NCBI GenBank assembly: GCA_047495785.1
Contig: JBLDXI010000029.1
Coordinates: 2,232,001-2,296,000 of the forward strand
Direction of reading: 5' to 3'
DNA: 64,000 nucleotides
From: Lepidodermella squamata
Taxonomy: Eukaryota; Animalia; Gastrotricha
Part shown: in pieces, positions 1-23,731 of the stretch
Position numbering within the stretch: the first letter of the stretch is position 1
Layout: every line of letters starts with the position of its first letter
Notes under the pieces: generated by a model
Told to the model about the DNA's origin: nothing
The model's input: the letters and a program-made list of their open reading frames with translations, nothing else
The model's database searches: none
Position numbers and translations under genes: made by a program

Positions 1-3000
1 TTTTGATTTCTTAAAGCATTGTAGGCCGGGTTTGCAGGGTCAAAGTACAACTCTAAAAATAGCGCGTGACGGTTAAAAATAGCACTATGTACTCTGTAAC
101 GTTCTATGTGTAGCCTTATTGTTCAAATTTTCGTCATTTTTTTAAACTATTTTAGAAATTCCACTATTAAAATAACCCAGCTTTCTCAAGCTACTTTTCA
201 ATAATCTGGAGAATCTGGAGAATTTGAAAAATTATTCTAACAACTAGCTGCATTATTTCAATAGCGTGAATCATGCTTTGGATTTTGACCTTACGAAACC
301 CCGCTAGGCCTAGGCTAGTCTCGTAGGCCAAGGCTAGGCCTATTCGCACCTGCCCAGTTGAGGTCTAGCCCTAGGCTAGGCCTGGTAAAAATGGCTCGAA
401 ATTGTTAGGCCTGCAATAGGCCTACTTATGTTTCTGTCGGCCTAGGTTAGGCCTAGGCATTGCATGAAGCCGATTGGTGTATTGTGTATTTATGACTTGT
501 GTATTTGTAATTATTAGTGTATTGTGTATTAATGTATTTGTGACATTGCGGCCTGCAATGAAAAAATAGCCTGGTCAATCTTGATATAATTTAAAACCAT
601 GCCATAGCCGATTTTTTTTCATTGTCAAACGTAAATTTGTGATGGCCATAGAGAATAGAACCTATTCTCTAACTCTATTCTCTATGGTGATGGCAATTTA
701 CGGTTCCTAATAATTCCATTGTGGAACCGCTGGTAAGTTGAACTTTGGCGCGCACGCTGATTGGTCAATTTATCGTTGCTAGTGACTCCGGAATTAAACA
801 ATTTAGTCGTGCGATCCACTAATAAATTATTTTATATTTATGCAAAAAATGACCTTGCCACACCCTCTGCACGGTTTCCATTGACCACGAGCGTAAACTC
901 CATATTAATGGTGGTAAATTGCTGCGGCAAAATACACTTGTTGCAAAAAATCTTATGGATCGCACGACCAACATGTTTCATCCGGGAGTCATAGCAACGA
1001 TCGATTGACCAATCAGCGTGCGCATTGGATTGGACTTTGAAGTGGTCACACAATGTCATTTAAATAATCTGTATCCGCTTAAAGAAATTGAACACCAAAA
1101 ACACGTTCAATTTTTCATTCAAATTCTTTAAAATAATTTCTGATCTTCTCTCGAATCGTCAAATATTTACCATTTTGAAAGCAGTAGTCTGCGTCGAATG
1201 GGCTGGGGCCGATCTGCGACGACGGCTGGCCTATGGTGTCAAGGCTGTGGTAGCAAATTTTGTCCAGAGTGGTGTAAACAATAACGGGCGAGGCGGGTTG
1301 CGTATTGTTGACATAACACTCCTTCACCGTGTTATTCCACGAGTAGCCGTCCGGGCACAGGCAGGTGGCGACTCCCTTGATGTTCGTACACATGAACTGA
1401 CAGTTTGCACTAGAGCAGTTCACTATATACACCAGAAAAATCAGCACTCACTGATCAAAAATTACGGCAAATATAACTCACGTTTTTGAGTAACAGCCGG
1501 AAACGGCTGGTAGCTGGAAAGCGCCCGAAATTCGCCATTCAAAGTGCGTGAATGACGCAGCTCTAGATTAGAACAGCACGAACCGTCAGCTTTAGGCACG
1601 ATCGAATATACAAAAATCGAAGAAACAGAATGCACGAGATCGACAACGGCCAAAAACATGAATCTGCTCTCGTACAGCTGAATGCTGCCAACTCGGCTGT
1701 TGAAAATAGTGTAGTTTTTGTGCGCTGTAATGTCGAATTTCGCAACAATTCTTCCGTGATAATCCAGCACAAATACACTGGTCGCAAAAGCTGCCCAGAC
1801 GCTGAAAATAATTCAAGAATTACAAATCCAGCTCAAAAATTAGAAAAAACTATTTACTGTTTCTTTTGGAAATCGACAGTCAACGCTCCAGGGAGCATCA
1901 AATCTGGGTTGATATCCGAATTGTCATTTGAAAAAACGGTGGGCGGGAAGTCGTAGATCTTTTTGCCCTCAGAGCCGTCCATTAAAGTTCTCCAAACGTG
2001 AATAGCACCAGCCACATCGTCACGACTTAGGAAAAACAAGTAGCCTTCGTTAGCATCGAGACTCAGCGAATATCCTTCGAGTTCGGATGAAGCGAAAGCT
2101 GTTTTGGAGATGCTGGTCGATGACAGTGAGAAAAAGCTCGAAATCGCAGCATCAGGAGAGCGATGCATCATCATGCTGTGGTAGTCGGTCAGAGGGACAA
2201 TTCTCAGCCATTTGAAAATCGGATCGAACCAAATCGCATTGCCGCCGACCCAATCGTAAGCAATTGACTTCACCCCAATCGAAAGTCCAGCGTAATGCGC
2301 GACAGTGTTGAAAGTTCCATCCATCCTCGCGCTAGCGATTTGGCGGAATTGGGTCTCAGCGATCAAGAGGCGCTGTTGATCCCAATCGACAGCTAGACCG
2401 ACAATGCCACTTCGAATCGTGAAAAGCTGCTCGCGCTGCGGTCGGCGAATCCAAGCGGCCGGGTCGCCTTGAAATCGATGGAATAGCGTATTATTCGTAT
2501 TCAACATTACCGCGTAAATAATGCCAGGCGAATGTAAGGTCTCTTTAGCGCAAGACGTGGTGCCATTGGGATTCGTGACAGTTACGTAATAATCGCTACA
2601 GGAGCAAGTCGATTTGACTTTCTCGTCGCCTGGAACGCATATGTGGTTGCATTTCAGAGATCCACACAACGAGTTGGATGGTTCCGAATATTCGTATCGT
2701 TTGAAAGTGACAATTTTCGACGAGGAGTTCAGCTTGAAGAGTTGCACGTAATTCGGGTCAATGATAGTTACATTATTGACGTTGTAACTCAATTTAACAA
2801 TTGAGTTTGAAGTTTTGTTCGTGTAATAGATTACACCACGACTAGCAGTCATAGGTGCGCAGGGGATGGTTTTCGAGTTGATTGGATCATGGCCGTCGAT
2901 CTTCATGACCAAGAGAACACCATTAACACAGTAGTGCAGCATCTCGTCGTAATTATCGTACGCCAGCAACTCGGATCCTTTCGTGAATTGAGAGGGCAAG

Positions 3001-3701
3001 CTGAATTCGGAACGGAACGAAGAACCATCTAATTTCGCAGTAAAAATAGTAAAAGATCCGTTCTCGGCAATCAACCGGTTCTTCTCAGTATCGAGGAAGA
3101 AAGTGCCATCGAGTCCCTCAGCTTGTTGAAACAAAGACTTTATCCTCAGGTCCTCGTTTTCATAGCGAAGGCTTATTCCAAGAATGCTGTGGTACCCAGC
3201 ATCGTAAACAAAGGCCACGTCATAGCTTGGATACACTCTGATTGTAAGAGGCGTTGTTTCTGGTTAAATAAAGTACACGTATGTATTCAATAATCCAATC
3301 TCGTCATTCAATAAGCGTCGTACCTTCTCTCAATTGATGAGACCTGAACACTTTTTGAAGGTCCAATGGGCCTTGCCAGATACCTTTCGCCTTCGGACGG
3401 CTGCTTGAAAAATAGAAAACACTTGTGATAGGGTTGAACTCTACATCTTCGATGTTCTGTATAGTATTTGGCACTGGGATAGAAATCCAAGTTGGCTCGG
3501 ACGATTTGTTGAAGTAATGTAGTGTATATGAAGCGTTGGCGTCGTCGTCTTGCGTTAGATAGACAAAAAACTCTGAAAGAAAGAAATGTTTGACCACGTC
3601 GGATAGAAATTAATGAATACCTACTCACCGCTGGTTGATGCGCAATTACAGCATATAACCGATAGAAAAAATATAAATACCAAATAGGTACCCGCCACCA
3701 T
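1..3701 (-). CDS. LRP-like YWTD-propeller/EGF receptor, copy A (5' half; 3' part lies left of the window)
   Basis: ATG at 3701 gives signal peptide MVAGTYLVFIFFLSVICCNCAST, followed by a GT-AG intron. ORFs 3304-3597, 1854-3236, 1462-1770 and 1115-1447 carry LY/YWTD-type motifs (LAVDWDQQRL, IAYDWVGGNAIWFD) and EGF modules (CNHICVP..CSC, CQFMC..CLCPDGY). The last donor is near 1171; the intron to its left stays homologous to the copy B intron down to base 1. Confidence 0.85.
300..545. repeat. Degenerate (C/T)TAGGC-rich and GTGTATT-rich low-complexity tract
   Basis: Many TAGGC/CTAGGCC units at 303-460 and TGTGTATT units at 477-545. The tract is not present in the copy B intron. Confidence 0.55.
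647..686. mobile_element. 40-bp miniature TIR element with 8-bp TSD
   Basis: 13-bp TIR CATAGAGAATAGA...TCTATTCTCTATG, flanked by the direct repeat GTGATGGC at 639-646 and 687-694. Confidence 0.8.
717..1055. mobile_element. MITE with about 110-bp imperfect TIRs in the copy A intron
   Basis: The left end (CATTGTG..GCGCACGCTGATTGGTCAAT..TCGTGCGATCCA) is mirrored at the right end. It is absent from the homologous site in copy B (about 20945-20950). No clear TSD. Confidence 0.7.
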
Positions 3702-5187
3702 TCTAAAATGGAAATGTCAAGTATCAATGGTTCAATCATTTCGAAATAATGGCGATTAGAACAAAATTAGTCAACGATTTGCAGGGTGAAGCAGGAAGCA
3801 GTTACTATACTAGCATGCTAACAACTGAAAAGATTCACATGCTTTCATATGCGCCAGAACATATGTGGTTTGGTCTATCATAAGCTTCGCACATCTCGGG
3901 CTTCGGGCTTCGGGCGACGAGCGATGAGGTGAGCCTTGAGCATTGAGTCGGCTCTCGTGGACAACTAGCTGATGCAAAATGTTGAGCACAGCATTTTTTA
4001 TATGAGCCACAGTATTACGAAAGCATTCTGACGAGTGCAAGAAAGCCTGAGCGTAGGTTATAAATGGCAATGCACTACGCCAGGCAATGTTACACGAATC
4101 ATATCAGAGAAGCGAGCCAAAGCGGAGAACTTTTCCGTTGTTGAACATGACTTTGAAAGCTCTAATCGCTAAGCTTATGGGGTTAATAGCATTTAGACGT
4201 AGTTTCAAAATGACGGTGCTGTGGAAGAAAAAAGGGAAAAAATGCATCCTTCAAAAACCAACGACTCAGTATGTGCCAATTCGATATTTTGTTATCTCTC
4301 CACTCATATCCACTCGTTTTCGACTCTTTCGGATTCGTAAATCTCAGCCGGCTCCGTGGTAGACTCCGTGGTAGACTCCGTCTTACTCGTGCTTCGTGCT
4401 ATATCATAAAATGTGATATCGCTCCGAGTCCACTGGGACAATAATGCGGACGCACGTTCTGATCGATGAATTGCAATTTCCGAACAGAAACATCATTGTC
4501 GGCAATGCCAATCACGCAGAAGTTTCAATGACAGTGGAAAGATGTTTCGAGGCTTCGAGCTGCCGGTAAATATTCGCCTGCAGATTCAGAGTACGATCTT
4601 GGATCCTGGAGCTGCCAATGATGGAAACATTTTTTTGCCAAAGTGACTACTACTACATAATTTCAACCAAAAAAACAAGCGAAGCGAGGAAATGTTTAAG
4701 ACATTCCACTCAAACAAGCTCAAACACTTCTCGAAATTGACGAAACAGTCAGAAACAGTGGGATAAATGTTCATTTTCTTGTCCGCTCTGGCCGAGCTGC
4801 ATAGGGCTAGGGGGAATGGACTTGACCAGCCACCTGGTTTCGGCTTCCAACCCGTGTACTGCTTTCGAACGATTAATACCACATTTGCCTATGTTTTTGC
4901 GCTAATACCGCATGCGTGGAGAATAATGCCCAATGCTTGGGGTAGACACGCTCACCATACTCTCAGCCGATCAGCCGAAAACATTAGAAACGAAGGTTAT
5001 AGTGATGATTTCAGCTTTTCCACTCGACATGTACCTTGGAAAAATAAAGCTGATTCAGTGGCGCTTTCCGCCTAGAGTAGCAAAAAACAACGGCAATAGG
5101 AAACTTCATTCAAAACAAGAGAATGTTCTGTATCGCTTTCCTTTTACTTATCTGAGATGCTTGCTAAAAAAAGTTAAAGATAAACAT

Positions 5188-8100
5188 TTAAAGTCCACCG
5201 TCAGGTTCGTTGAAGATGTCAAGCCCGTTGTTATTATTGCCCACTCTTCTTGTAGGCGTGCTTCTTTGAAAACCGGATGATGACGCTTGGGTATTTGGCC
5301 TCGAATCCACATCGTCCAGGCCGAATACAGGATTTCGGAATGAAACAGAGCCCGGACTCAAGCCGCCAGCAAAAGCTTCATCTTCGTCCATGCGGAAGTA
5401 GGAGCTATCTGGGCCTTCTAATCGCTCGAATCCACGAGATCGGGGGCGCCTTAAAAACAAATGGCTTGTAATTTGATAAAGATTAATTAAGGTGGCCACC
5501 TCTTGAAGTAAATCACTAAGCCAACAACGATAGCAGCAACAACGCAGAATCCAATAATGCCGATAACAATCCCTGATGTGCTTCCGGAAGATTTTTCATC
5601 TACAATAACACACTTTATTAGAATTACATCACCAATAAAGACGTGACAGTACCTTTTTCCTTTGATGCAGCTGCCGTTTCATTTGCCGATGAGACTGGCT
5701 CGTCCGAAACCGTTTCAGATGTCGTAGTTTCGGCCTTGCTACTTCCGGCAGAAGTCGTCTTCTTTGGGGCTACGCCTCCGCCATCTTTATTGCTCGGAAG
5801 TTCGGTTCCGGCACCGCTTTCGTTGCTAGGTACTTTATAACCGATCATGGCGCTCAAACCGAAAAATCGAGCTTTGCCAATAGTGTTCACCTGCTCCTTT
5901 GTATCCAATCGGAATACACCGATTCCACCTCCTAGTGAATCCGCGGCTAACAGCAAACCGTCCGAAACGAAAATGCTTCGATACAACGCTGTCACCTTGC
6001 CACCCGAAGTCAAGAAAACCTTGGCAGGCGCTGTCAAGTTCTTCAGATTTTTCGACGCGATAACTCCGTTGCAGGAGATGAATAAAGTGTCACTAGCCTC
6101 CTCAACGAAGAGCGAAGCATACTGTTTGCCAACAGAAAATTGCTTTGGAACAGTGAATCCGCTGAAACTGGAGGCATTGCTACCATCGCGTTTCATTCGA
6201 AAGATGGTCAAAGTGGTATTAGATTCGATAACTTGAGCAGCAACATAAGTCCACCTGTAAAAAGTTGAAAAATTATCCTAATTCTTGCTGAGGAGCCGAC
6301 TAACTGTCGAGAGATGGTAATTCCCAAAAAGTTGACCGAATCATTTTGAGAAATCATTTTGGGACGCATATGCGAATCTAAGGAAACACTGAAAATCTTG
6401 CTCGATTGAACGATGGCGAAAAGGAGTCTGGAGTCATCATCGATAACTATTCCATTCACCGGGCTGTTAACTGGAAAAAAGGAGGAAAATTGCAAAAGCT
6501 ATGATAAATCAAAGAATTTGCTACCATTCCAAAACAATTCCTCGATGTGCATTCGAGTCCTCCTAGCTTCCGAGGTTTGCATTGCTGGATTGATGATGAA
6601 AATCGTTTTGCGAACAGAATCAAAATAATACACATTTCCCTCTTGGGCGTCGAATGCTACTGCTGTGGGCACGGCCTTAATTCGAGAAATGATTAGCAAA
6701 GAAACTGATGGCTCCAGTTTATATCATACCAAGTGATGAAGTTTGAGAGAACTGAGATTCGACTCAATGAACGAGGATGAAAGGATGTCACTTGTCATCA
6801 CCGAAGAATTGGGCATTGGTACCGCAAATATCGCGCGATTCGCTTCATTAACCGCGAATAGAGCGCCTGTTCGATACAAATCTATCGAACGAGGCTTGCA
6901 GCTGAATCCATCGGACATTAGACCCATTCCAAAACTGCAGATGCATTTGGCAGCTAGACAGAAGTGTTCACATTCATCGATGGGGCCATCGCCGCAAGAA
7001 TCAATTTCCGTTTCTAAAACAAAAATTCTATTAATTTAATTGAGAAATTCTTAAAATGTCTCACCATTCAAGCCGTAAAAAGCAGCAGCTTCCAGGGTAG
7101 GACTTACTACAGAGAATGTCATTACAGAAGCATTTCTAGTCGCGTCAGATAAATGATAATCAATGTCGAAAAGGCCGGTAGAAGACAGTGTTGAAGTTAG
7201 GCCAAGATCGTGACTCGAATAGAGGTTGCCATTCTTATCGACGAAGAATGCGTATTGTTGATGAATGGCAAACCTCACGATACTCTTCAACTGTTTGTTC
7301 AAACTGTATGTGTCGATTTTCGGCTTAGTAGGACAAGAGCTATTGGCAATAGGGAACGATCTTGGGACGGAATCGAGTTTGAGCACGCCCAATTCAGGCG
7401 CTCCTTCAATCGGCCTCAAAAATATCAACGTGTTGTTAGCGTAAGAAACGTGCATCTGAGAAATGGGGTCTTCAAATTCAGCAATTTCGCATTTGTTCTG
7501 CGCCGCTAGGTCGGTTTGATAAAGCAAGGTTTTCCCTCGCGATTGCGAAAATTCAGCCCAGTACAAAAGCCTAGGAGATGTTACAATGCTCGATAATAGA
7601 ACAGATGATTATGATTGTTACCTTTTTCGTACATCAACAGTCAGAGCCGTAATTCTGGCACCTTGCAGCAGTATTCTCGGAATGCCCGGATTTTGGTAGA
7701 TGACAAATAATGTCGCTGATGCAGCGTCCGCAACATAAGCGGCATAGGCATAGAAATCATATGCAATCGCTACGACGTCAGTCTCTCGAGGCAGCATTGT
7801 TGCGGTCGCGAAATATTTGACATTATTTGAATAATAGCGGAACATCGGATCAAACCGGAAAGAATTGTATGACATGTTATTTTCGGCGACGTTTTTTACA
7901 AAGCCAGAAATCGTGTTGTCTCGATCATCGGGCGCGATCGCAAGAAATTGCCCGCCTGCAAAGGACACGGTAAGATGTTGAGTGCCTAAAGACTAATATT
8001 TCAAGTTATACCGGTGGGATAGCATAATTCTGGAACTTTCAGCTCAGATGGAGCATTGATGGAAGAATCGATGCGCCGGAAGCATATGATATTCTCCTTC

Positions 8101-10408
8101 GCAAATGCAAAAACTGGTAGACCAGGTCCCTCTTCGTTAACTAATGAATGCTGTTTCAACAAAATCCTGCTAGCATGTTAGAATCGTTACCTATGCATTC
8201 ACTGACTCCGGAAAGCTTGTAACCATCTGGACAATCGCATTTAGCTTCCTTATCATCATTTATGCAAATATGGGAGCAATTCTTGCTGTAACAATCAACT
8301 GTGAAACATCGAAAATCGTAATGCCTAAAGCAAATTTGTTCGAAACAAAGGATACCTTTAGAAACAGGCGAAGCTTGATGAACGAAAAGGCCTCGAAATT
8401 CTCCATTAATTGGTCTCTCGTGAATTTTGGTTACACCTTCAAAATCTTGGTCAATTTGATACAATGCCAGGACGTTCGATGAGGAATTGCTGTTAACCAA
8501 AGCAATCGCTGCGTAGGAAGACTAACAAAGAAATTAAAGAAAGAAGGTCTCATTTTCAAGGGCTTACGTTCAAGATTTGAATTGCAGCAACACGACTGCT
8601 TTCCAGCTCAAAGCCATTTATGTTTATCTCTTTCTCCAAAAGAAGTTTCCCCTGGTAATCCATGGCTACAATTCGGTTGACAAATGCGATCCAGATGACT
8701 TTCTTCCAGGGATCTACTGTCAAAGCTCCCGGCAAAGGATGGCTAGGATTGTTGTCGTCAACATTCTCGTCAAAATACGATGTGTTGAAAGATTTCTCCA
8801 TCTTCAGCGGCGCAGAGCCATCCATCTTAGTTTTGATTACGTAAACCACAGACTCGGAATCGTCAAGGTCGAGGAAGAACAAGAAACCAGCAGCGGGATC
8901 AACCGCGAGGGAGTAGCCCTCAAGATCGCCCATAACTTGAACAGTTTTATACGCATGCTCGTGATTCCTGTCATGTAACGGGACAATCCTCAGCCAATGA
9001 AAAGCCGGGTCATACCACATGATGTTCTCGCCAACATAATCATAAGCAATGGACTTGATTGCAGGTGAAATCGAGTTGTATTTAGTCAGACTAACGCGAC
9101 CGCCTTCCGGGGAGAACGAGAATAATTGGCGAAGTCTGTTCTCCACGGCGAACGTTCGATTTCCGTTGAAGTCTGACGTCATAGCCAAAACGCGGGAGTT
9201 GACTTTCAACGCCCGTTCTCGAATAGGCCGCCTTGTCCACTGCATCGGGTCTCCGGTGAGCCAAATCATGCTGGTTTCCGTCTCCGTAACTGCAGATTCC
9301 AGCAAGGCGAAACCTGGCAGCCGAATTTGATCCGGGATGCATCTGTCATCGACGAGAGTGTTGAAATCCGAGCAGATGCAAGTTGGCTTCCCGGCCCGGC
9401 CGTCAGGTACGCATAGATGGTGGCATCTTCCAGGCAAGCAAACTGCCTTCGCTGTCTCGTTGAAGTCATAACGCTTGAAAGAAATGATTTTCGTTTTCGA
9501 TGTCCAATCTGTCGGAAGTTTGATGCTTCCGGTCAACGTTAAATTTAGTTGGTCTCCGGTTATGTTGTAGTCAAACTTAACAATCACACTTTGATTGAAG
9601 TAGAGAATCTCGCTGTTCTCAGCAATCATCTCAGAACAAGGAAGGTCACTTGAAACGACCTTAGAATCGTTACCCAATGTCAAACCAGCGACGAAATTGC
9701 TCCGGCATAGGAATACAATTGATTGGCTTTGATCATAGGCCAAAATTGCGGAAGTGTTATCAGGAATCCTCGCGGCTAGTTTCGGCTTCGATTCAGTTAA
9801 ACCAGATTGGTAAACTTTGGTCATGTTTTTGTTGAATGAGATTAACGTGTTTGAGATTTTGTCGAGGAAAAACGGTTTCGTCAGACTTTCAACCTCCTGG
9901 AAATAACCCTTCGAATTGATCTGCCGCATTTCGGATAAACTCAGCCCAATTATCGCTTCATAGCCGTCATCGAACACGAAAAACAGGTCGTAATCCGGTA
10001 AAATTCGAAGTTGGGTCGGTTTCGAGGCGGCTCGGGAAAATTTGTGGGAAGGCCCCAAGCCGAGGTCGAGCAGGTTCATACTTGCGTTCCAAACGCCTTT
10101 GGTATCTTGGGGTTGGCTGGTTTGAAAGTAGAATCGGCGATTTAGCGGATTGAAATCGACGTCATCGATGAATTTTAGCCGACTTGGAATCGATGGAGTG
10201 ATCCATGACGATTTGTCAATGTTTCCGCCCTCGACGTAATGAAGCGAATAAGCATCCTCATTTGCAGCCAATATCAGGATCAATTCTGATGAATAACAAA
10301 TAAGTTGACCCTGAATTCATATTTTACGGCGGACTTACCTGTAGCACATGAATTTTGAGCGAAATTGGCAAGAAAGACAATTAGAGCAGCTATCACATTG
10401 AATGACAT
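5188..10408 (-). CDS. LRP-like YWTD-propeller/EGF single-pass receptor, copy C (complete, compact introns)
   Basis: Signal peptide MSFNVIAALIVFLANFAQNSCAT from ATG 10408. Propeller/EGF ORFs at 8556-10283, 8156-8500, 7618-7968, 7051-7566, about 6200-7010 and 5624-6211. S/T-rich stalk, TM exon GIVIGIIGFCVVAAIVVGLVIYF (about 5501-5600), and a tail containing FRNPVF that ends at 5188. Confidence 0.85.
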
Positions 10409-11631
10409 AATTTTCTCGGATCTAAAAATTAAGCCTTTGAAACAAATGACTGAATTTAATTTTGTATATTAAAAAGTCTTATATGTAACTAAATCCATGA
10501 TTCAACTCGGTTTAGCTTAATATACTCTTCATGGGTGACGCATTGTTTGCTAAGAAACTGTGACTACTCAATTTATAGCTGGCGAGAGAGAAAGATGCAA
10601 ATTTAACTGCGGGAAGCCGGCTCGCACGTGCATATTGGTGTCAAGTATGACAAGTTCTAACACACATGCTGGCCTGAAATTCAAAACCACGAATATTATA
10701 TAAGTGTATTACTCATGTTGTCTAGTTTTGTATACAATTTTTTTATATACGTAGAGCAAGAGTAAACGGCGTGTATTACGTGACTATTTAGAAATGAAAA
10801 CAGCATTCATGTTTATTGCATTTAGCCTGGCGTTATTTATTACCTACCTCCTACCTAGCATAAGCTTTTCATACAAGCATACAAGCTTATATATTTGAGA
10901 AAAAACGCGGAGTGCACAACATTGTGAGCGAAAAAAAACGTATCAAAAATTAATTGCACTGCGAAAAGTTATTTTAGGAAATAATGTCAAACGCGAGTTA
11001 CCTCAAAAAATAATTTGACCGCGAATGATTCACTTCGGGGATGTTTTGTCAATTAATTAATGTGTCTACATTTTATTCCTAATTTTCGCTATCCGCTATG
11101 CTACTCGCGTAATTTTGCACCAATTATTCCGTAGGGATTCCACGTGCGATATGAATATGAAGTAAAGGGATCGAGATAATTGGTGAAAAAGCAAAAAACG
11201 AATTGACTTAAATTGAAAATTAAATCAATTTATTAAAATTAAATCGTTAGCTTCAATTTATTTAAAAGATGTTATATATAATTTTTGGATTTTTTTAAAT
11301 TTTAACATCATAATGCAAAATGTTGACAACACTGATTGAATTTAAGCAGTTATTGTGCTGAAAGCTGAATTCCCCAATGTTTACTTGTCACCCCTTGAAT
11401 TCACCTGAAAAAAATCTAAATTGGTCCTCCTTTGACTGTTAACAAATGCGAGGCAATAAAAGTGTCATAAACTAATAAAAACTATTATCATTTGATAATA
11501 TTACATAATTATAGAGCCTGAGAAAAAAGCGATAAGAACGGTGTACGTGTATGACTTTAAACTGATACAGATGCTGGCTCGGAATATTATTTACGTGCGC
11601 CGTCACCGTATCGATAAATTGGATACGCATC

Positions 11632-13168
11632 ATGGCCGATGTGCGTTTCGGTCTGCTAATTTTTGCTGCCTGTTCAATAATGATTTCAGCGGCCACGTCG
11701 AACAACATGTGTTCGGAAGATTTTGTTATCGGAACCTGTATCTGCAAATTACCCGCAAATGAGGACAGGACTGAGGTCACGCTTGATTTGACAGATTTGG
11801 TGGCGAAAACCGAGGAATATGCGTATGCATGAATTGCGATTGAATTTCGAAATTAGTTTTAAAATATTAATGTAGGCTTGTTGGTAATGATACCCTCAAT
11901 GTTTGGAAGTACTATTTCGCGTTTTGCAACAAACTAAATCTGCCTCAATATCCGAAGTGCCATAAATCCGCTAGTGTTTGCCAGGTTTATCGGCAGTCGG
12001 GTTACGCTGTTGGCCGACCTGAAACTACGCAATTCGAATGGCATGGCAGGCCAGGAGCGGCGAACGGTGAAATGACGCCCGCTCTAGTCACTAATAATGG
12101 AGTCAACGAGTAAGAAAATATATTATCTCGAGATCCTATCATGATAACAGCAAGATTATAATTTTACAGGAAGACAATAGCCTATCTAATTTGTGAGCCA
12201 GATGGCTTGGATCTGAGAAAGGTATCAATTGATGCTGAGCCGTGGTATGCTGATCAGGATTCCGACGGATTCCGATTAACGGTAATTTTCGGGAACCAAA
12301 ATGAAAAATGCTGGGATATTCAAAATTTCTCCTTAATGAATATTACGATTTTAAAATGAACTGGACCGAAAAAATCTTTGCGATTATAGGGACATGGTGC
12401 TAGGGACCTATGGGTCGATCTAGCGTCCGCGATTTCACCCAAACTTTCTTGAAAGTTAAATGCATAGCTTACTTCCGCTTCTCAGTATTTTGCTTTCAGA
12501 ATATCTTTTAGCAGAACCAAAGTCACGGTGAGCGGAACCTAATTTGCTGTAGCGAAACCGATGTGCATCTTGCGGAACCTAATTCAAAATGTGCCAAACG
12601 TTAATTTTCAAATAATTATAAGAACTCGGGGCTAATGATTTCTAAAGTGAACGCTACGTCTTGCACAGAAATTTACGTCGAATTCGAGAATAATTTATTC
12701 AGAATTACGAAGGTCCATAATAACATCTTTGGAAGCTCTCAAAAGTGGCCAATAGATACCGTAATTGATCCAATAGTAGCCCATCCACTTATAATCGCCC
12801 ATCCCCAGCCCAGGGTTGTGGGGTTAATTCAGTTCGAAAACATCAAAAATGAACGATTCACCTACAATTATTTTTTGAAATTTTCAAAATTTCCAGGTTG
12901 AAAATTTACTAGCCCGGGCTGCTATTGGAACATACGGTATTCCAAAAGTTGATCCGCTACAGCAAATTAGGTTCCGCTCGCCGTAAATTTGGTTCCTATA
13001 ACAGGAGGACCATTTTACTAGTCATTTCTCATGTTTCCTTTTTTTCAGCTCATCAACTTGAGAAGTCCTCGATTCTGCGAAATAGCCAACCGAGTCAGCT
13101 CGAGTGGTCAAATGCCTACCTCTTCTATTTACGCTCTGGTTTTTTCTATCCTCACGGTTATGCTCTGA
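11632..13168 (+). CDS. Secreted, probably GPI-anchored single MRH (mannose-6-phosphate-receptor homology)-like domain protein, 218 aa
   Basis: Exons 11632-11822, 11876-12109, 12170-12281 and 13049-13168 splice in frame at GT-AG sites (657 nt). Features: signal peptide, LDLTDL, YYFAFCNKL, ASVCQ, KTIAYLIC, LRSPRFC (MRH-like pattern), then SSSG plus a hydrophobic C-terminus (IYALVFSILTVML*). Confidence 0.7.
12510..13000. mobile_element. MITE in intron 3 of the MRH-like gene
   Basis: GAGCGGAACCTAATTTGCTGTAGCG near 12530 is inverted at about 12955-12980. Ends are approximate. Confidence 0.6.
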
Positions 13169-14064
13169 ACATTTATTTTATATTGCGGCCACCGAACAAA
13201 TTTGTCAACAAGCTTGCGAAACAAAAGAACAATAATTACTCCATGAAATTTGAGTTTTATTTAAATTTCAAAAAAAAACAACTTAAAACGTTGAAATATT
13301 CAATGTGATCGGCGATATCATAATAATATTATTAATAATAATCGTCGCGGTTAACGACTAAAAGGTTCACCACGCGAGAGCTCACGATCTTCGAGAACAG
13401 GATAGAGAGTAGGCGGTTGCTAGCCGCGCGAGAAAAAAAAACGAAAGAGATAAAGCGAAAGATCAACTAAAAGATCATTTTTTCATAAATTCAGATTGCT
13501 AAACACGCCTCGAGAGAGAAAATTTCACGCGGTCTTTTGTTGGATTTTGCAAACAAACGTAACTTTTTTAAAGTGGCGAAAAACGATGCCCACAATTATT
13601 AGTAAAGATGAAAACCCCAAACAGCAATTATCATGCTTTAAATTCATGTGTTAAATTATTTTTGTATCATGCTTTGAGCGAGATGAGAGAAGAAAAGATC
13701 GACAGAAAAAAACTCAAGCGCGAAAAACCACTAGAACAATGAGCTGTGACGACAGCAGATCAAACGGAAATGATTCATAGCAAAAAAGCGGTGTGCATCA
13801 ACAAAATTCACAGGATGTTTGATTATTTTTGCATTTTTTTCTGATATCAAGGTGCGTTGAGTTTTACATGATTGTTTTTGCTTATAATACCATAAAAATT
13901 TAAAAGCCGGAAAAAGTGCGTCGCAATTTTGAATCAACATTATAATAGTAGGGTGGATAAATTACATTCAGACTAAGCATCACAACGGAGACTGAAAAAA
14001 TTTCTTCCGACTAAAAAAAGGTTATTTTTTCGATTTTTTTCAATATGATTGACTTTGTATATAA

Positions 14065-17000
14065 CTAGAAGATGACAACTTGGCCGTCGCGTTGGCCGGG
14101 TTGAGACTGGGATTGCGGATGCGCAGGGCCGCCGGCTGGTTGCTGCAGCCGGGGGTCGATCACCGTTACATTGTCGATGTCTTCCATGCCGAACATCGGA
14201 TTTCGGAAGGCCACTGTACCAGCCGGAACGCCGCTTGCCACCGCGGCCGAACCGGTGATCAAATTACCAGCGCCTGGCGGGTCGTCCAATCGCCGGAAAC
14301 CTCGAGCGTTCGGTCGCCTGGATAAAAAAATAAAAAAATTAGAAAAAATCGAAAAAATCACAGAGTAGTTAATATAACCAGCTGGTTAGAGGAAAGAGCT
14401 ATTTTCGGAATAATTACTTGATTAAAATTCGAAAAATCCAACAAAATCCAGATATTAAAAAATCCACCTTAATTTTTTGATTTTTTGGGTAAATATTTTT
14501 TCCAAATATAGCTCTATCCTGCTTTAGTTATAATATAAAATGCAATAATCGTGGTGAAAAGGTAGAACAATGCGTTGATTTTTTCAAGTTAAAATCAAGT
14601 CAAACGATGCTATGCCAAAAACACGTGTTAAAATGTAAAACAATGCATTAGGTTGTTTGTTATAAAGCAGCAGCTCAAAAAATCGGTGAGTTAAATATGA
14701 ATAAACGAAAGCAAACCGCACCTGAAAACCCTTGAACAAGACAGGTAGAAAAATAACCAAAAAATTACAGACATTCACGCGCATACAAAGGGTAATTGAT
14801 TTCCTATGATTTTCGCATTCTCGGCAATTACAGAAGCTAATTTTACGGCATGCAAACTCGACAACAAGCATAGGTATTATATCATCGATTAAATACCCAA
14901 ATATGTGTCTAATTTGAGGGTTCTGCATCAAGTTACTGCTTTGCCAGTAATTGAACAAGGATCTGTATATAGTAGGTGCATCAAAGTCCGTTATCCAGTG
15001 CATGTAAAACCGCAAATATCAAAGCCATTCGTTATAAAATTTGCTCAAAATTGCAAATTCAAGCTGCATTTTTTTATAATTCGTAGAACGTACCTTCTGA
15101 AGTAGACAAACAGGCCAACAGCTGTTCCGACTAGCATTACTACCACTACAACAATGGCCACGATAATTCCGGCCGAAGTTGTGGACGTGTTCGAAGTCGC
15201 TAAAAAATTGTTTCAAAAATCAGGAAAATTCTAGAAAAAATTGAAATTTCTTACAGGCATCAGCTTCACTTTCCGCCTTCCTATCCATAACTGCTGGGGT
15301 ACTTTGGGTGAAAGGGAAAGTTCGAACATCCGATGTCGTGAATTTGGACGAGCCTAAAAAATCAAATTAGTTAGCAAAATGGCTTTTAAATAACAGATAT
15401 AAGCGAAAATATTAATAAAGCAAAACTGGAGTCACTAAAACGCACTCGAAGAAATTATTTCTTCAAACGTGGTTGTTGAAAAACCGTTGTTTTCATCTGT
15501 GGCTGTAGTTGCTATATTTTTTCGATCAAATCGAATCATTTCATGCGAATAAAAACCGGCTAATCTCAATACCTGAAGTTGGTTTGGTGGGTTTCGTAGT
15601 TTTCGTGGCCTTGGTCGTTTGACCCGGCTTCGTCGGGACAGTCGACGGTTTCGGGCTGGTCGGATTCAACTGGCAATAGTTTTCGATCGGCTGAGACCAG
15701 AACGCCGTCAAATTGTTGGTCGACAAACATTTCAACGCGAACGTTTTTCCCTTGAATCCAGACTGCATTTCAGGGCCGTTCGAACACGTGAAATTACACG
15801 AGGCATTGATGCGCAGCGTGCAGGCTTCGTCAAATGAACCGTAAATAGCCGCTGGTTTCGGGCAAGCGACAACTGAAAATTAAAACATTTAGTAAAAAAA
15901 ACAATTTTTCCTTAAATTATCTACCATCTTTGCAGTTCACGCCGTCAACAGGATCTGGCGAGCCAAACGGGCATTTGCAGGCCACCTTAGCATTAGGCAT
16001 CGGTATGCAAATATGGCTGCAGAATTTGTTGTGGTCGGTATAATGGCATGGGGTAGTAAAATTGCCCTTATCATCGTGTTCGCGGCTGAAAACGGCCAGG
16101 CCGTTGAGACCGGTGAAAAACGACCCGCCAATGACGCCCTTCTTTTGTTTGGTTTTCAAATCGAAAACGTGGACACCGCGATGTTGCCAATCAGTCGCCA
16201 GCAGGTAGTTGCCATACACCTGAACGCCGTAGATGAACGACGGGTCTTTATCGCTTCCCTCAGTTGCGAACAGCTGCGGGCCGTTTTCGATGTTTTTCAA
16301 CTCGACATACATAATCGAGCGATTTTGGCCGGTTGAGAAGTAGAGACGGTCGGTTTCGTAGTCGATCGATAGTTCGTAGATCCAGGGCACGGTTTTCGTC
16401 TTGTCCTGGCCGGTTGCTGAGAAATAAACGACTTTGGTGCAGTTTTGGCCGTTCGGGAAGCAACGCATGATAGCGGACCAGGTGCTGGGCTGGGCATTCG
16501 AGCCACTAGCAGTCGCTGGGGTAGTCACGTTTCGAGTAGCAAAGTAGATGTGCCTTGAATAGAAAAAATGTCAAAAATGAATACACAATTCAGCAATTAA
16601 TGATCACGCAAATATTTGAAAATTACTGGCAATGCGGATACATTTTCAACTATTCATAGTAAAACGATGGAAACCGGGATTTATATCACATAAAAGTATC
16701 GCTCTAAAATTCTTCCTATCAGCTTTGTTTTGAAATTAAAATCAAGGTGGCGTAAATCTATGTTGAGAAAATCTGGTTTTGGGACCCCGTTATTTATTTT
16801 TAAAGGTCAAATATTATTCTGGATTTTTCAATGAATTCTTGAATCGACGTTCCTACGCTTACACCCCTCTAAAATTTAAATCCAACAACTAAAATGTAGA
16901 TGCCCTGCTATTACGCATTGTTGGATTTACCTGGAAATTTTCGGTGAAAAACGCAAAATTAAGGACAGAATAAACACGTCGCCAAGAATTTAAATAACGG

Positions 17001-20000
17001 GTCTTTTCTTCTCTTTGCTTCAAAATGAAACCCACATTTCCAATTATGAATCTCAAACACGCGGTTGTATAAGCAACTGAGCGTCTAAAATTTGTTGCTG
17101 ATAATTCAACGTTTTTAGATTTCAAAAAATCCGGTAAACATATCAAAATACGCAGTAAAATTACAAATTACCTAGCCCAAGTCTGGTTCATATTTCAGAA
17201 ATACTAACACCGATTGTAAAAATGTGAGAAACTTGGTTTGTGGTATTTTGTCCGACACTTTCCATCGTTAGGGAGAATACTTTCAAATGTTTGTACAATT
17301 TACAATTGATCATTGCCAAGAACATTCGTTAATTTCAGATTTTGAATTCAAATATTCAAATCATTATCATTTACATTCGATCCGGCCTCCGGTCCATGAC
17401 AACGCCGTAGAAACTGGTGTATGGATCCGCTTGATACAGGATAGTCGTGTAATTTTTACTTTCCATGTCAAAAGCGGCGACATAGTGACCCTCGCGGTGA
17501 GTGTAGAACAGCAAGCGCGATTCGTGGTCGACAAACAGACCGTACACCTTGTTGCCTGTAGCCAGGAAAATTTCAAAAATATAATTAGAAACGATAAAAC
17601 AAATATGCAGCGCTAATAATTATTGGAGGTCAGTCGCTACTATTGTTATTAAGGTGGCTGCTAATTATCGATCACCGTCGACCGCCCACGTCCGGTAAAG
17701 CACTCAGCCGCCCGTTGTTAAGCAGCGCTAATAAAAGCAGCTCGAGGCCATCGATGTCTCTCATTTGACAACAACAGGAAGATTGAATTCAAATGAAATA
17801 CAACAAAATGAGAGGAAGTATGACATTTCACATCTAGGGTATACTAATTAAAAGGCACGACACTTACAGCAAGCTAAAGCGTTTGCAACGCAAATTAAGC
17901 TGAATTTGATTGAAAATTAAAAGGCGGCTCTAAAACTAGAAGCCTCAACTTTCAATCAACTCGCAGAGTACAACGTTTAGAAATGAGAAAATAATCAGGA
18001 TTCTGATTTCAACACGTCGTTGATTGCCAATAAGTAATTAAAGATAATTGAGATTACGCCAAAATTAGTTTTCAACCAAAAAATTCAGAACGCAGTCCGA
18101 AGGCAATATATAATTTTGTTTATTTTCGAGATATAGCGATTAGAACCCAATTTTTTGTTAATTTCGAAATTTTAAAATAAAAATCGATAAGATGAAGTAC
18201 ATAAAAATTATAAAAAAAATGTTATTCCTATCTATGAATTTTTTATTTTATTTTCAATAATTCTCATCAATTCTGTCCTTCCAAATAATTTCCTTTTAAT
18301 TTTCATATCAATGATTAGGCCACTTCGGACTGCAACAAAGACTTAATCTTAAATTTTCTCATCGAAATTCAAACTTGAAAGTATGAAAGAAGGCGCACGA
18401 AAAGCAATTCATAGGTTACTTCATAGCTCTCAACGCTTTTTGATATATCAATTCCGTTGCCTTTCGAAAAAACCTGACCTGTCAACGTCATGCGGGTTGC
18501 GGCTATAGACAACAATGCATACATACATTATACGTGAATGAACAAGGCATGTCGTTGTTATTAATTGATTATTCAACAATAGCAATGTTACGATAACCCG
18601 TGTATTGTAACGTTTTCACCCCGCGCGTGATTTGCATTAAGGCCGCGCATCACTCACCTAGATGAACCACCGTCTCCTCCATGTGACCCTGGTCAGGATC
18701 GCGCGCCATTTGCGTCTGCGGGTTCACGCGGATTATCGAGCCGCGTTCATGATCGCCGAAATATATATCCGACGTGAGGGCGTCGAACGCGACCGAGTAC
18801 GGCCGCGCCTTAGCGTGGATGAACAGCGCGGACAGGTTGTTTTGAACCGTGAATGAAAATTCGCCCTTCGCCGACTGCTGCACGGTTTTCAGCGGCAGCA
18901 TGAATATTTTGTGGTGGTAGTCGTCGACACTGATAATAGCGCCCTCGTTTAGTAGATCGATGGGCCGCGGGGCACAGTGCCGCTGGTCCGGCATCAGCAC
19001 CATGCCGTCCGTGCACGCGCAGTGCGACGTGCTGGCATTGCTGTTCCACGAGGCGAGGCACAAATGCTCGCAGCGGCCGTGCTCCAAATCGGCGCAAATG
19101 TCCTGGTACGCTGTAAATTTGAAACGAGAATTAAAAATTGAACTGATTCGGTGCGGCTCGTTTAATCAAATATGATCGTGACTCGAACGATTTCAACATC
19201 AAAAATTGATGAAATATCGCTGATATAGCTGAGTTCAGCTTAACGACTCAATATCCAAATTGAACGAACGCTAAATCCAATCCACAAAAATTGAATTGTA
19301 CGAAAGTAAAGAAATCTCTTAGTTTTAATAATTTCAATAAATTTTGAAAGCGAGTTTAAAATTTAAAATTAATTTAATCAGAAAATGTATCAAACGTGAG
19401 AAAAATTATAGAATTTTTATGGATGAAAAAGCTTTCGATGAAGCGAAAAGAAAAAATTAGGTAATTTCGGCTATAATTTAAAAATAATTTTCAATTCCAA
19501 GTGATCACTTTCTGAAACTTCGCTACAATTTCAGCAAGCAGTTTACAATCAGAGCATCAAGAATTTCGGCCCATATTTGAATAAATCTTGCAGTTTAATA
19601 GCAAAATCGATATGAATAATCGAATTAAGATTTTTGAAAATACTAACCAAGATTAGAAGGATTCGTGTTGCTGATAGCTTGCGTGTCAGTGCTCGCATTT
19701 TGAAACAAATACGGGTTAACCACAGCTAGCGATTTGATCGGTCCACGCATGCCCGACGACGGTAGGGTAACTTTCCGCAACTGAATCTCCTGGTCGACAG
19801 CCGCGCCCATCGAGTTCGACGTGTACAGTTTCAAATCCGAATTCGACCAGGACGAAAACATCAGAATACGCTGGTAGACTGCAAATTGGGAGATATTTGC
19901 AATGGCGAATTGCGAATACGCTATCGTCGGTTGTTGGCATGACGAAAACGGCGGTAGACTGCGTAGATTGTACCAACCAAGTCTATTCGCCGGCTGCTCC

Positions 20001-23000
20001 AGGAACAACAGGGTCGTATTTGCGTAGGACACCTGCATTTGGGCAACATTGCCTTGAACAGTTCCCAGGACACACTCGCCAGTTGCGTCGAGATTCAACT
20101 GACTGATCGTGCTCAAATTTGTCGCGTTCGAATAAGTGGCCCAGTACAATTTTCGTCGCATGGCATCAACAACCAGGCTTGTGATGTTAACGTCCTCCTT
20201 AATCAAAGCCGGGAAATAGTAGTTATCCCTCAGAACCACCAAGCTGCGAGAAGATTGATCAGCGATGTAGAGATTTCGGCCGAGCCAATCGAAGGCCAAG
20301 GCAACAACTGAATTTCCAGAGTAGAAAACTTCCCACTCATCTGGGGCGCCGTCAGTCATCATTCCTAGCGTGGGAATCGATATCCAGTCGAAAACGCGAC
20401 TAGCCTGGCGTAACCTCAGGTTGTAAATCGCCGCTGGCATGTGATTCTGCTGGACGGCGTAAATTCGATAGGCAAAGTGGTCTGGTTCCATGATACTGTA
20501 CTGCTTTTTGCCTGATAAAAATACAGAAAATCCACCTTAATATTTGAAATTTTTTAAATAATAGCAGTAGAGAAAGGACGTTACAAAAACAAAACAAAAA
20601 AAGAAACTTTTTTAGTCGCAAAATTTAAAATTAAACTGTTAGGTATTAAATACTAGAAAATAAATCGACTTTACTTATTGTGAAATTAGCAAGGCGGATG
20701 CGATTTTGATTTCTTAAAAAATTAACCTAGTTAATCCTGATTTATAACCATGCCATAACCGATTTATTTTTATTATCAAGCGTAAATTTGTGATCAGCCA
20801 GCTGATTTCAAAGCGAACCAACCTTTTGTCGAGGGCCTGTTACCACTAACTACAAAATTAAGCGTAAAATAGTTGAAAGCATCGTCTAATAATGAATTAA
20901 ATATTCCATCTTACTGTAAAATGGAAATATACGGTTCTTAAGAATTCCTTTAAAATATCTGTATCCGCTTAAAAAAATTCAACACCAAAAACTTTACACT
21001 TGAAAGCACGTGTACAACAAATCGCAGTGAGAGTATATTTGTATAAAAGCAAAGCGGTGATTTTTGCGTGTTCTATTTTTGCCAACTTACCACTGAAATA
21101 CTCCGGTTCTAATGTGCAGAGAAAACATCATAACAATATTGATTTACACCGTTCAAATTTTCATTTTTTCAATAATTCCTGATTTTCTCTCGAATCGTCA
21201 AATATTTACCATTTTGAAAGCAGTAGTCTGCGTCGAAAAGGCTAGGGCCGATCTGTGACGACGGCTGGCCTATGGTGTCAAGGCTGCGGTAGCAAATTTT
21301 GTCCAGAGTGTTGTAAACAATCACGGGCGAGGCGGGTTGCGTATTGTTGACATAACACTCCTTCACCGTGCTATTCCACGAGTAGCCGTCCGGGCACAGG
21401 CAGGTGGCGACTCCCTTGATGTTCGTACACATGAACTGACAGTTTGCACTAGAGCAGTTCACTATATACACCAGAAAAATCAACACTCACTGACACAAAA
21501 TTACGGCAAATAAAACTCACGTTTCTCAGTAACAGCCGGAAACGGCTGGTAGCTGGAGAGCGCCCGAAATTCGCCATTCAAAGCGCGTGAATGACGCAGC
21601 TCTAGATTAGAACAGCACGAACCGTCGGTTTTAGGCACGATCGAATAGACAAAAATCGAGGAGACAGAATGGACGAGATCGACAACGGCCAAAAACATGA
21701 ATCTGCTCTCGTACAGCTGAATGCTGCCAACTCGGCTGTTGAAAATCGTGTAGTTTTTGTACGTCGTTATGTCGAATTTCGCAACAATTTTTCCGTGATA
21801 ATCCAACACAAACACACTGGTCGCAAACGCTGCCCAGACGCTGAAAAAATTCAAGAATTAGAAATCCAGCTTAAACATTAGAAAAAACTATTCACTGTTT
21901 CTTCTGGAAATCGACGGTCAATGCTCCAGGAAGCATCATATCTGGGTTGATATCCGAATTGTCATTCGAAAAAACGGTCGGCGGGAAGTCGTAGATCTTT
22001 TTGCCCTCAGAGCCGTCCATCAAAGTTCGCCAAACGTGGATAGTACCAGCCACATCGTCACGATCCAGGAAAAACAAGTAGCCCTCGTTAGCATCGAGGC
22101 TAAGCGAATAGCCTTCGAGCTCGGACGAAGCGAGGGCTGTTTTGTAGATGCTGGTCGATGACAGTGAGAAAAAGCTCGAAATCGCAGCATCAGGAGAGCG
22201 ATGCATCATCATGTTGTGGTAGTCGGTCAGAGGGACAATTCTCAGCCATTTGAAAATCGGATCGAACCAAATCGCATTGCCGCCGACCCAATCGTATGCA
22301 ATTGACTTCACCCCAATCGAAAGTCCAGCGTAATGCGCGACTGTGTTGAAAGTTCCATCCATCCTCGCGCTAGCGATTTGGCGGAATTGGGTCTCAGCGA
22401 TCAAGAGGCGTTGCTGATCCCAATCGACAGCTAGACCGACAATGCCACTTCTAATGGTGAAGAGCTGCTCGCGCTGCGGTCGGCGAATCCAAGCCGCTGG
22501 GTCGCCTTCAAGTCGATAGAATAGCGTATTATTCGTGTTCAACATTACCGCGTAAATAATGCCAGGCGAATGTAAGGTCTCTTTAGCGCAAGACGTGGTG
22601 CCATTGGGATTCGTGACAGTTACGTAATAATCGCTACAGGAGCAAGTCGATTTGACTTTCTCGTCGCCTGGAACGCATATGTGGTTGCATTTCAGAGATC
22701 CACACAACGAGTTGGATGGTTCCGAATATTCGTATCGTTTGAAAGTGACAATTTTCGACGAGGAGTTCAGCTTGAAGAGTTGCACGTAATTCGGGTCAAT
22801 GATAGTTACATTATTGACGTTGTAACTCAATTTGACAATTGAGTTTGAAGTTGTGTTCGTGTAATAGATCACACCACGACTAGCAGTCATAGGTGTGCAT
22901 GGGATGGTTTTCGAGTTGATTGGATCATGGCCGTCGATCTTCATGCCCAAAAGAACACCATTAACACAGTAGTGCAACATCTCGTCGTAATTGTCGTACG

Positions 23001-23731
23001 CCAGCAACTTGGATCCTTTCGTGAATTGAGAGGGCAAGCTGAATTCGGAACGAAACGAAGAACCATTCAATTTTGCAGTAAAAATAGTAAAAGATCCGTT
23101 CTCGGCAATCAACCGGTTCTTCTCAGTATCGAGGAAGAAAGTGCCATCGAGTCCCTCAGCTTGTTGAAACAAAGACTTTATCCTCAGGTCCTCGTGTTCA
23201 TTGCGAAGGCTAATCCCAAGAATGCTGTGGTACCCAGCATCGTAAACAAAGGCCACGTCATAGCTTGGGTACGCTCTGATTGTCAGAGGTGTGGTTTCTG
23301 ATTAAATAAAATATGCTAATCTATCATGTCATTCAATAAGCGTCATACCTTCTCTCAATTGATGAGACTTGTACACTTTTTGAAGGTCCAATGGGCCTTT
23401 CCAGATACCTTTCGCCTTCGGACGGCTGCTTGAAAAATAGAATACGCTTGTGATAGGGTTGAACTCTACATCTTCGATGTTCTGTATAGTATTTGGCACT
23501 GGGATAGAAATCCAAGTCGGCTCGGACGATTTGTTGAAGTAATGTAGTGTATATGAAGCGTTGGCATCGTCGTCTTGCGTTAGATAGACAAAAAACTCTG
23601 AAAGAAAGAAATGTTTGACCACGTCGGATCAAAAACACTATATACTCACCGGTGGTTGATGCGCAGTTACAGCATATAACCGATATAAAAAATAACAATA
23701 TTGAATAGGTATGCGCCATACCCGCCACCAT
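14065..23731 (-). CDS. LRP-like YWTD-propeller/EGF receptor with a Sushi/CCP domain, copy B (complete, about 14 exons)
   Basis: The 5' half (21169-23731) is nearly identical to copy A. It continues in phase through exons at about 21091-21108, 19648-20511, 18659-19111, 17375-17556, 15924-16553, 15572-15872 (Sushi plus T/K/P stalk), 15255-15352, 15094-15199 (TM GIIVAIVVVVVMLVGTAVGLFVYF) and 14065-14317 (tail containing FRNPMF). Confidence 0.85.

Follow-up and report, generated by a model that had tools for sequence, protein, structure and literature searches.

A tandem cluster of propeller/EGF receptors without LDLa repeats in Lepidodermella squamata, and predicted proteins of the same plan in Lingula and Capitella

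The 64,000-nucleotide stretch of the genome of the gastrotrich Lepidodermella squamata analysed here (hereafter the window: positions 2232001-2296000 of contig C29, in an assembly of 121 Mb and 151 contigs) carries three genes, A, B and C, of a tandem cluster whose fourth member, D, is located upstream of the window. We consider it fairly probable that these genes, which evolve fast, belong to a still unnamed branch of the LDL-receptor superfamily that is devoid of LDL class A (LDLa) repeats. B, C and D each encode a type I membrane glycoprotein with four YWTD-type propeller/EGF units, a mucin-like stalk, one transmembrane (TM) helix and a short tail. As shown by comparison of the predicted sequences, the plan of a signal peptide, four YWTD-EGF units, a Sushi module, a stalk and a TM helix, without LDLa, is shared with proteins of Lingula anatina and Capitella teleta. 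The architecture is real, but it is not unique to this animal, and the view expressed in the original prediction, that it is unfamiliar and lineage-specific, cannot be maintained, since these proteins are the best and only colinear profile matches of the family. The counterpart exists, however, as a predicted protein and not as a described receptor. Accordingly, of the overall interpretation offered before, the local expansion and a probable endocytic role stand, whereas the lineage-specific novelty does not; a Sushi-like module in C and D, an FRNPxF motif in the tails of B and C, the membrane-less form of A, and gene D itself are features added by the present analysis.

Gene models and domain architecture of the cluster

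The genes were modelled with GT-AG introns by a codon-usage-weighted dynamic programme trained on the mTOR/TOR kinase gene of the window, and the models were then curated by alignment of the paralogues. The region examined reaches 30 kb upstream of the window start, and negative window coordinates denote contig positions before that start. The same-strand arrangement of three paralogues proposed earlier was recovered, A, B and C all being encoded on the minus strand, as is D, the fourth copy outside the window. Each of the four genes keeps an open frame over its whole length (1471-1696 codons) and has GT-AG introns, most introns of the region being 45-90 nt long. The models are as follows (lengths in amino acids, aa).

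Gene A, window 3701 to -5773 (about 5.8 kb past the window start), minus strand: 9 exons, 1471 aa
Gene A, exons inside the window, minus strand: 3701-3629, 3572-3324, 3259-1858, 1801-1482, 1422-1171; four further exons lie before the window start
Gene B, window 10408..5189, minus strand: complete, 12 exons, 1539 aa; every intron GT-AG and 45-90 nt
Gene B, exons 1-6, minus strand: 10408-10339, 10285-8568, 8521-8191, 8140-8012, 7955-7622, 7570-7065
Gene B, exons 7-12, minus strand: 7013-6792, 6704-6525, 6470-6305, 6254-5653, 5599-5500, 5449-5189
Gene C, window 23731..14066, minus strand: complete, 12 exons, 1696 aa; GT-AG model with the ATG at exactly 23731
Gene C, exons 1-6, minus strand: 23731-23650, 23597-23349, 23297-21896, 21840-21521, 21461-21210, 20511-19648
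Gene C, exons 7-12, minus strand: 19110-18658, 17555-17375, 16553-15925, 15872-15573, 15199-15094, 14317-14066
Gene D, C29:2220949-2215293 (11 kb upstream of the window), minus strand: fourth paralogue, 12 exons, 1695 aa

The exon 3/4 and 4/5 junctions of gene C were confirmed by colinearity with an uninterrupted metagenomic homologue (P0002), and one splice junction of gene B by colinearity with another (P0001); gene C may possess one or two additional S/T-rich stalk exons within 15560-15210. A genome-wide search with the long exon of gene B retrieved these four tandem loci and no other copy, in line with the locally expanding family that had been postulated. Proteins B and C are 33% identical.

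Searches against Pfam, the Protein Data Bank (PDB) and the large protein collections, as well as the structure predictions, were run exon by exon, and the spliced proteins were used for alignments, hidden Markov models (HMMs) and the tree. B and C, already described as complete copies in the original prediction, display a signal peptide, four degenerate, all-beta propeller domains of 280-340 residues with cysteine-rich EGF modules between them, an S/T-rich stalk, a single hydrophobic helix and a tail that is 86-89 residues long. The elements of C, followed by those located in the C-terminal part of B, are:

Propeller 1 of C, 22705..23653 (aa 27-308), minus strand: the most degenerate of the four
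EGF1 of C, 22588-22704, minus strand: precedes propeller 2
Propeller 2 of C, 21457..22587 (aa 348-686), minus strand: the best conserved
EGF2 of C, 21355-21456, minus strand
Propeller 3 of C, aa 721-1061 (propellers 3-4 span 16049..21354), minus strand: HMM matches to YWTD propellers at 27-30 bits
EGF3 of C, 18974-19096, minus strand: Pfam FXa_inhibition and EGF_LRP2 matches on the exons of EGF3 and EGF4
Propeller 4 of C, aa 1103-1436 (within the same span, 16049..21354), minus strand: HMM matches to YWTD propellers at 27-30 bits
EGF4 of C, 15932-16048, minus strand
Six-cysteine Sushi-like module of C, 15673..15864 (aa 1481-1544), minus strand: directly after EGF4
S/T/P-rich stalk of C, 15171-15672 with an intron inside, minus strand: 68% S+T+P
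TM helix of C, 15102..15170 (aa 1588-1610), minus strand: by inspection of the sequence, about 23 hydrophobic residues with basic residues after them
Tail motif FRNPMF of C, 14191..14208 (aa 1650-1655), minus strand: in the 86-aa tail (exon 14317-14066), by regular-expression search
Stalk of B, 5574-5830, minus strand
TM helix of B, 5508-5573, minus strand
Tail motif FRNPVF of B, 5323..5340 (aa 1490-1495), minus strand: by regular-expression search

In order to establish whether the large domains are of the LDLR type, several lines of evidence can be combined. Pfam Ldl_recept_b gives no score on any of the propeller exons, so that "degenerate" is an apt word for them. Nevertheless, hydrophobic-aromatic residues of A-D stand in register with each of the 16 YWTD motifs that can be recognised in the Lingula protein, and this applies to all four propellers. 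Propeller 2 has as its best per-domain HMM match propeller 2 of the Lingula protein P0008 (55.7 bits), and in a phmmer search of the PDB its counterpart in B finds LRP2 and LRP6 propellers at E values of about 1e-3. Likewise, at the level of coarse fold matching, the top 37 matches listed by Foldseek for the AlphaFold2 (AF2) model of B exon 2 are all chains of LRP2, LRP6 or LRP4 (E 2e-15 to 4e-13), with WD40 proteins ranking behind them. For propeller 1 we only infer the YWTD type: its aromatic motifs are in register with those of Lingula propeller 1, and the AF2 model of this domain in B is all-beta and matches WD40, PROPPIN, nidogen and LRP6 propellers alike. The EGF exons show matches to Pfam FXa_inhibition and EGF_LRP2 which are weak and below the curated cut-offs. 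The cluster thus combines YWTD propellers with C-terminal EGF modules, the combination by which a protein is assigned to the LDL-receptor superfamily, and its description as a member of that superfamily without LDLa is upheld.

A Sushi-like module is present in C and in D, where an HMM of the six-cysteine Sushi modules of Lingula, Capitella and Sinanodonta scores 20.0 and 19.5 bits, respectively, and all six cysteines and the tryptophan align with those modules; Pfam Sushi does not match it in either protein, nor does any Pfam family match the tails. The tail motifs of B and C are of the FxNPx[YF] type, like the internalisation signal of LDLR.

In the usual textbook account, LDLa ligand-binding repeats are the foundation of the LDL-receptor superfamily. 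Their absence from the cluster was assessed with an HMM derived from 15 LDLa repeats in the LRP1/2-like gene of the same genome; as a positive control, this HMM scored up to 299 bits on its source locus. When all six frames of the 56-kb cluster were searched, introns included, no match was better than E 0.2, and hence neither LDLa-encoding exons in the introns, which the original prediction had named as a finding that would refute it, nor the LDLa ligand-binding repeats of the classical core members LDLR, VLDLR, LRP1 and LRP2 were found. In agreement, the 150 PF00057 matches scored across the genome include no locus on C29. The motif PPP[ST]P is likewise absent from all of proteins A-D, as had been stated for PPPSP. 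Elsewhere in the genome a first look gave 617 LDLa candidates, dozens of them on contig C32 in short open frames (e.g. C32:3.12-3.38 Mb), a clustering that points to an extensive tandem family of genes with LDLa.

Gene A is a truncated copy of C. The two genes are 89-93% identical in nucleotide sequence, introns included, with the homology ending at window -5742, and the stop codon of A stands directly after EGF4. A tblastn search with the C-terminus of C finds nothing further for A, which is thus devoid of exons for the Sushi module, the TM helix and the tail. Over 1470 codons the comparison of A with C yields a dS of 0.20 and a dN of 0.023, and the resulting dN/dS of 0.11 indicates that A is under purifying selection. 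Since it ends just after EGF4, A is a membrane-less form, and most likely encodes a secreted ectodomain. In intron 8 of gene A (window about -3362 to -4562) blastn reveals some 1.2 kb that are not found in the matching intron of C and contain several open reading frames (ORFs) of 50-100 aa; this insert may be a transposon insertion.

Relatives in other organisms and phylogenetic position

A HMMER search of 1.84 billion representatives, with the 575-aa ORF of B that holds its 572-aa exon 2 as query, gave only 35 matches at E<=1e-3. The top three (P0001-P0003) are ENA metagenome fragments with identities of 61% to C, 41% to D and 33% to B, which implies that the paralogues are older than the split from the organisms these fragments derive from; a third search, of the word-index type, found P0002 and P0003 and nothing else. 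A scan of metagenomes led to a single locus, which proved to be an ordinary LRP1/2-like C-terminus and was discarded as a relative. Next in rank are proteins of amphioxus, rich in Ldl_recept_b and EGF modules and without Ldl_recept_a, and after them the Lingula protein P0008; LDLa-less propeller/EGF/Sushi proteins are also found in bivalves, in a holothurian (sea cucumber) and in corals. All these relatives are uncharacterised and bear automatic names of the LRP1-, LRP4- or LRP6-like kind. A literature search on YWTD plus Sushi architectures and on surveys of the LDLR family in Lophotrochozoa found no paper on an LDLa-less receptor of the Sushi type.

The closest resemblance is to Lingula XP_013396320 (P0008, 1658 aa) and XP_013396319, automatically named "LRP1 isoform X2" and "LRP6 isoform X1", and to Capitella CAPTEDRAFT_227414, which was found by a search seeded with P0008. 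Like the cluster, these proteins present a signal peptide, four YWTD-EGF units, six-cysteine Sushi modules, an S/T stalk (threonine-rich in P0008), a TM helix and an NPxF tail (NPAF in P0008), and no LDLa. They differ in the number of Sushi modules, which is three or four as against one in C and D and none in B, and in propellers that are canonical and recognised by Pfam, which those of the gastrotrich are not; in addition to NPAF the Capitella tail contains NPVY. We know of no tandem expansion or TM-less copy for the Lingula/Capitella type.

A-D align colinearly with P0008 from the signal peptide through the tail at 20-24% identity, and the FRNPMF of the C tail is aligned with the NPAF of Lingula. 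In a search of the 153 proteins collected for this analysis with an HMM covering the family over its full length, the first ranks were taken by P0008 (248 bits), P0041 of Lingula (244) and P0046 of Capitella (234). Among these 153, only the Lingula and Capitella proteins can be aligned in one colinear stretch (about 164 bits each) from EGF2 through propeller 3, EGF3, propeller 4 and EGF4 to the Sushi module, and a second Lingula alignment (76 bits) covers propeller 1, EGF1 and propeller 2; LRP6 proteins, in contrast, are matched in scattered, non-colinear pieces of 8-26 bits. In the reverse direction, the Lingula protein matches the cluster on C29 position for position (propeller 2 on propeller 2, propeller 4/EGF4 on propeller 4/EGF4), its other matches in this genome being nidogen, the LRP1/2-like gene and a gene on contig C19 with LDLa and propellers.

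A maximum likelihood (ML) tree of the four-propeller cassettes (21 rows, 1232 columns; LG+C20 PMSF model) recovers LRP4 and LRP5/6 as clades and splits the group of A-D, Lingula and Capitella from LRP4 and LRP6 with an SH-aLRT of 100, in what is an unrooted tree from a quick search with only two outgroup-free partners. Dreissena P0169 falls outside this group. Approximately unbiased (AU) tests reject a union of the cluster with LRP5/6 (difference in log-likelihood, delta lnL, 56.6; p 1.9e-5) and with LRP4 (delta lnL 56.0; p 8e-6).

Proposed mode of action and alternative readings

We tentatively hypothesize, with somewhat less than even confidence, that the cluster belongs, together with the Lingula and Capitella proteins, to an old third lineage beside LRP4 and LRP5/6, in which a Sushi module would have replaced the LDLa repeats, ligands would be bound by the propellers and an FxNPxF motif would direct internalisation, and that the gastrotrich genes form a receptor/decoy system of membrane-bound B, C and D and secreted A. 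Since LDLa repeats are missing, ligands would have to bind via the propeller faces, perhaps aided by the Sushi module. Binding of this kind is known from the LRP6-Dkk/SOST, LRP4-agrin and nidogen-laminin complexes, all of which occur among the structural matches. The FRNPxF motif of B and C may recruit adaptors with a phosphotyrosine-binding (PTB) domain and thereby lead to clathrin-mediated uptake; the FxNPxY internalisation signal of LDLR tolerates phenylalanine in place of tyrosine, Dab-type PTB domains bind unphosphorylated NPx[YF], and genes for PID-domain (PTB) adaptors are present in this genome. The receptors are probably endocytic, as the original prediction had proposed without citing the FxNPxF motif of the B and C tails. 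D, in which the motif has been lost, may not internalise in the same way and could represent a non-internalising or differently routed variant, and A, as a selectively maintained, membrane-less ectodomain of C, would most likely act as a secreted, soluble binder or decoy for the ligand of C.

Several observations speak against this placement and this mode of action. The stem of the gastrotrich group is very long (3.6 changes per column) and deviant in composition, and its grouping with the moderately long branches of Lingula and Capitella could in part be due to long-branch attraction. Per-propeller HMMs favour Lingula for propeller 2 only, and narrowly, and are otherwise generic. The AF2 models have low confidence (pLDDT 55 for B exon 2 and 52 for propeller 1), being derived from 7-row alignments and fit for coarse fold matching only, and hhalign aligns propeller 1 with the canonical YWTD propellers of this genome at a probability of 7%. 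Variation within the cluster must also be considered, given that B has neither EGF4 nor the Sushi module and that D has no NPxF motif, with YRNLQE at that position; moreover, a single NPxF motif is no proof of endocytosis. Finally, neither of the large protein searches returned a protein or transcript-derived copy of this genome's own genes.

Some of these points would be accommodated by an independent origin in gastrotrichs, from an LRP4- or LRP6-like ancestor which lost its LDLa repeats, the likeness to Lingula and Capitella being convergent or a long-branch artefact. The identity to Lingula of only 20-24%, the per-propeller scores that barely separate Lingula from other LRPs, the long and compositionally deviant branch and the failure of Pfam to recognise the Sushi-like module would all agree with such an origin, which we nevertheless regard as unlikely: solely the proteins of Lingula and Capitella can be aligned colinearly all the way from EGF2 to Sushi (about 164 bits), the six-cysteine variant of Sushi occupies the same position in them, an NPxF tail is common to all three, and the AU tests reject both LRP6 and LRP4 as sister groups. 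The same tests (delta lnL 56.6, p 1.9e-5 for the LRP5/6 clade) make it very improbable that the genes are divergent Arrow/LRP5/6 Wnt co-receptors that have lost LDLa. Such a reading would explain the four propeller-EGF units in the order known from LRP5/6, and no clear LRP5/6 orthologue, with C-terminal LDLa and PPPSP, was identified in this genome; however, PPP[ST]P is found in none of the four tails, and the family HMM matches LRP6 only in scattered pieces without colinearity.

As to function, the proteins might mainly be adhesion or matrix-organising molecules or signalling co-receptors, in the manner of nidogen or of LRP4 with agrin, A being a secreted matrix component, and not serve cargo uptake. 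Propeller/EGF modules without LDLa serve as scaffolds between proteins in LRP4 and in nidogen, for which this genome has a gene, the purifying selection on A in the absence of a membrane anchor would fit a matrix component, and D is without NPxF. Even so, B and C retain an LDLR-like FxNPxF, NPxF or NPxY is also found in Lingula and Capitella, and a mucin stalk with a single TM helix is a typical receptor topology, and we consider this function improbable as the main one. Least probable of all, with hardly any weight in our estimate, is the possibility that the copies are pseudogenes in decay or that the assembly is at fault, for example through an uncollapsed haplotype or a chimera. The published L. 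squamata assembly was made from multiple displacement amplification (MDA), a source of chimeric reads (PMC11660948), and A is truncated relative to C; on the other hand, A and C differ in 7-11% of their nucleotides and have B situated between them. The four intact frames of 1471-1696 codons with their GT-AG introns, the A/C dN/dS of 0.11 and the homologues in other organisms indicate that the genes are functional and not decaying.

Comparison with known receptors and neighbouring genes

The proposed LDLa-less branch can be set beside the characterised members of the superfamily. Like the proteins of the cluster, LRP5, LRP6 and Arrow are type I proteins of comparable size with four YWTD propeller-EGF units, and the ligands of LRP5/6 (Wnt, Dkk, sclerostin) are bound by the propellers and not by LDLa, as seen in PDB entries that are among the matches. 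They differ from it in three LDLa repeats before the TM helix and five PPPSPxS motifs in the tail, neither of which is found in the cluster; where LRP5/6 has the LDLa repeats, between EGF4 and the TM helix, C and D carry the Sushi-like module. LRP4/MEGF7 likewise has four propeller-EGF units, one TM helix and a tail of the NPxY type, and its binding is mediated by propellers (the agrin/LRP4/MuSK structure 8s9p is among the Foldseek matches), but it possesses eight N-terminal LDLa repeats, of which the cluster has none, and the LRP4 clade was rejected. YWTD propellers and EGF modules without LDLa also occur in pro-EGF, a type I membrane protein found as a weak match only in the protein searches, in nidogen, and in Drosophila Cueball, another type I membrane protein; these have one or two propellers against four in the cluster, no Sushi module and other flanking domains. 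The LDLa-less proteins of amphioxus, corals, bivalves and the holothurian (P0004-P0007, P0099, P0110, P0094, P0169, P0162) contain many Ldl_recept_b and EGF modules and often Sushi, but the number and order of their propellers differ, HYR, WAP or other domains are added, and they are not colinear with the cluster.

Four-propeller, LDLa-less, Sushi-bearing receptors sit in the databases only under misleading automatic names such as "LRP1-like" and "LRP6-like", and caution is advisable before the names and functions of LRP1, LRP4 or LRP6 are applied to such genes. The gastrotrich cluster illustrates that this branch can diverge beyond the recognition of its propellers by Pfam, expand in tandem and yield a membrane-less copy kept under selection, and it offers a system in which the propellers are the sole possible ligand binders. 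If the branch is old, it bears on the origin of the cassette found in LRP4 and LRP5/6.

Two further genes with YWTD propellers were noted in this genome. A nidogen gene (C13:1162501-1172500, minus strand) encodes NIDO, a G2F-like domain, EGF modules and one canonical YWTD propeller, and is the best Ldl_recept_b match in the genome. The LDLR-family gene on C19 (C19:1191001-1201000, plus strand) has a signal peptide, one clear N-terminal LDLa and propeller exons which match LRP6 propellers 1-4 in order; no PPPSP motif occurs in these 10 kb.

The window has a GC content of 37-51% across 2-kb windows, mostly about 42%. Between B and C, at 11632-12901 on the plus strand, lies a small gene whose first ORF has a signal-peptide-like start and is followed by cysteine-containing pieces. 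It is presumably the "MRH-like gene" of the original prediction, a putative assignment which Pfam did not confirm, its three ORF pieces having no match at E<=1. Between A and D (window -6547 to -9586, minus strand) the ORF translations point to a bZIP-like gene, with a basic region and a leucine zipper, and to a furin/subtilisin-like proprotein convertase gene. The neighbours of the cluster also include an ELMO-domain gene, an ABHD gene, GALE, bestrophin and the mTOR/TOR kinase gene used for training, which is located at window 47130-57581 on the minus strand and has very long exons, one of its open frames reaching 1245 aa.

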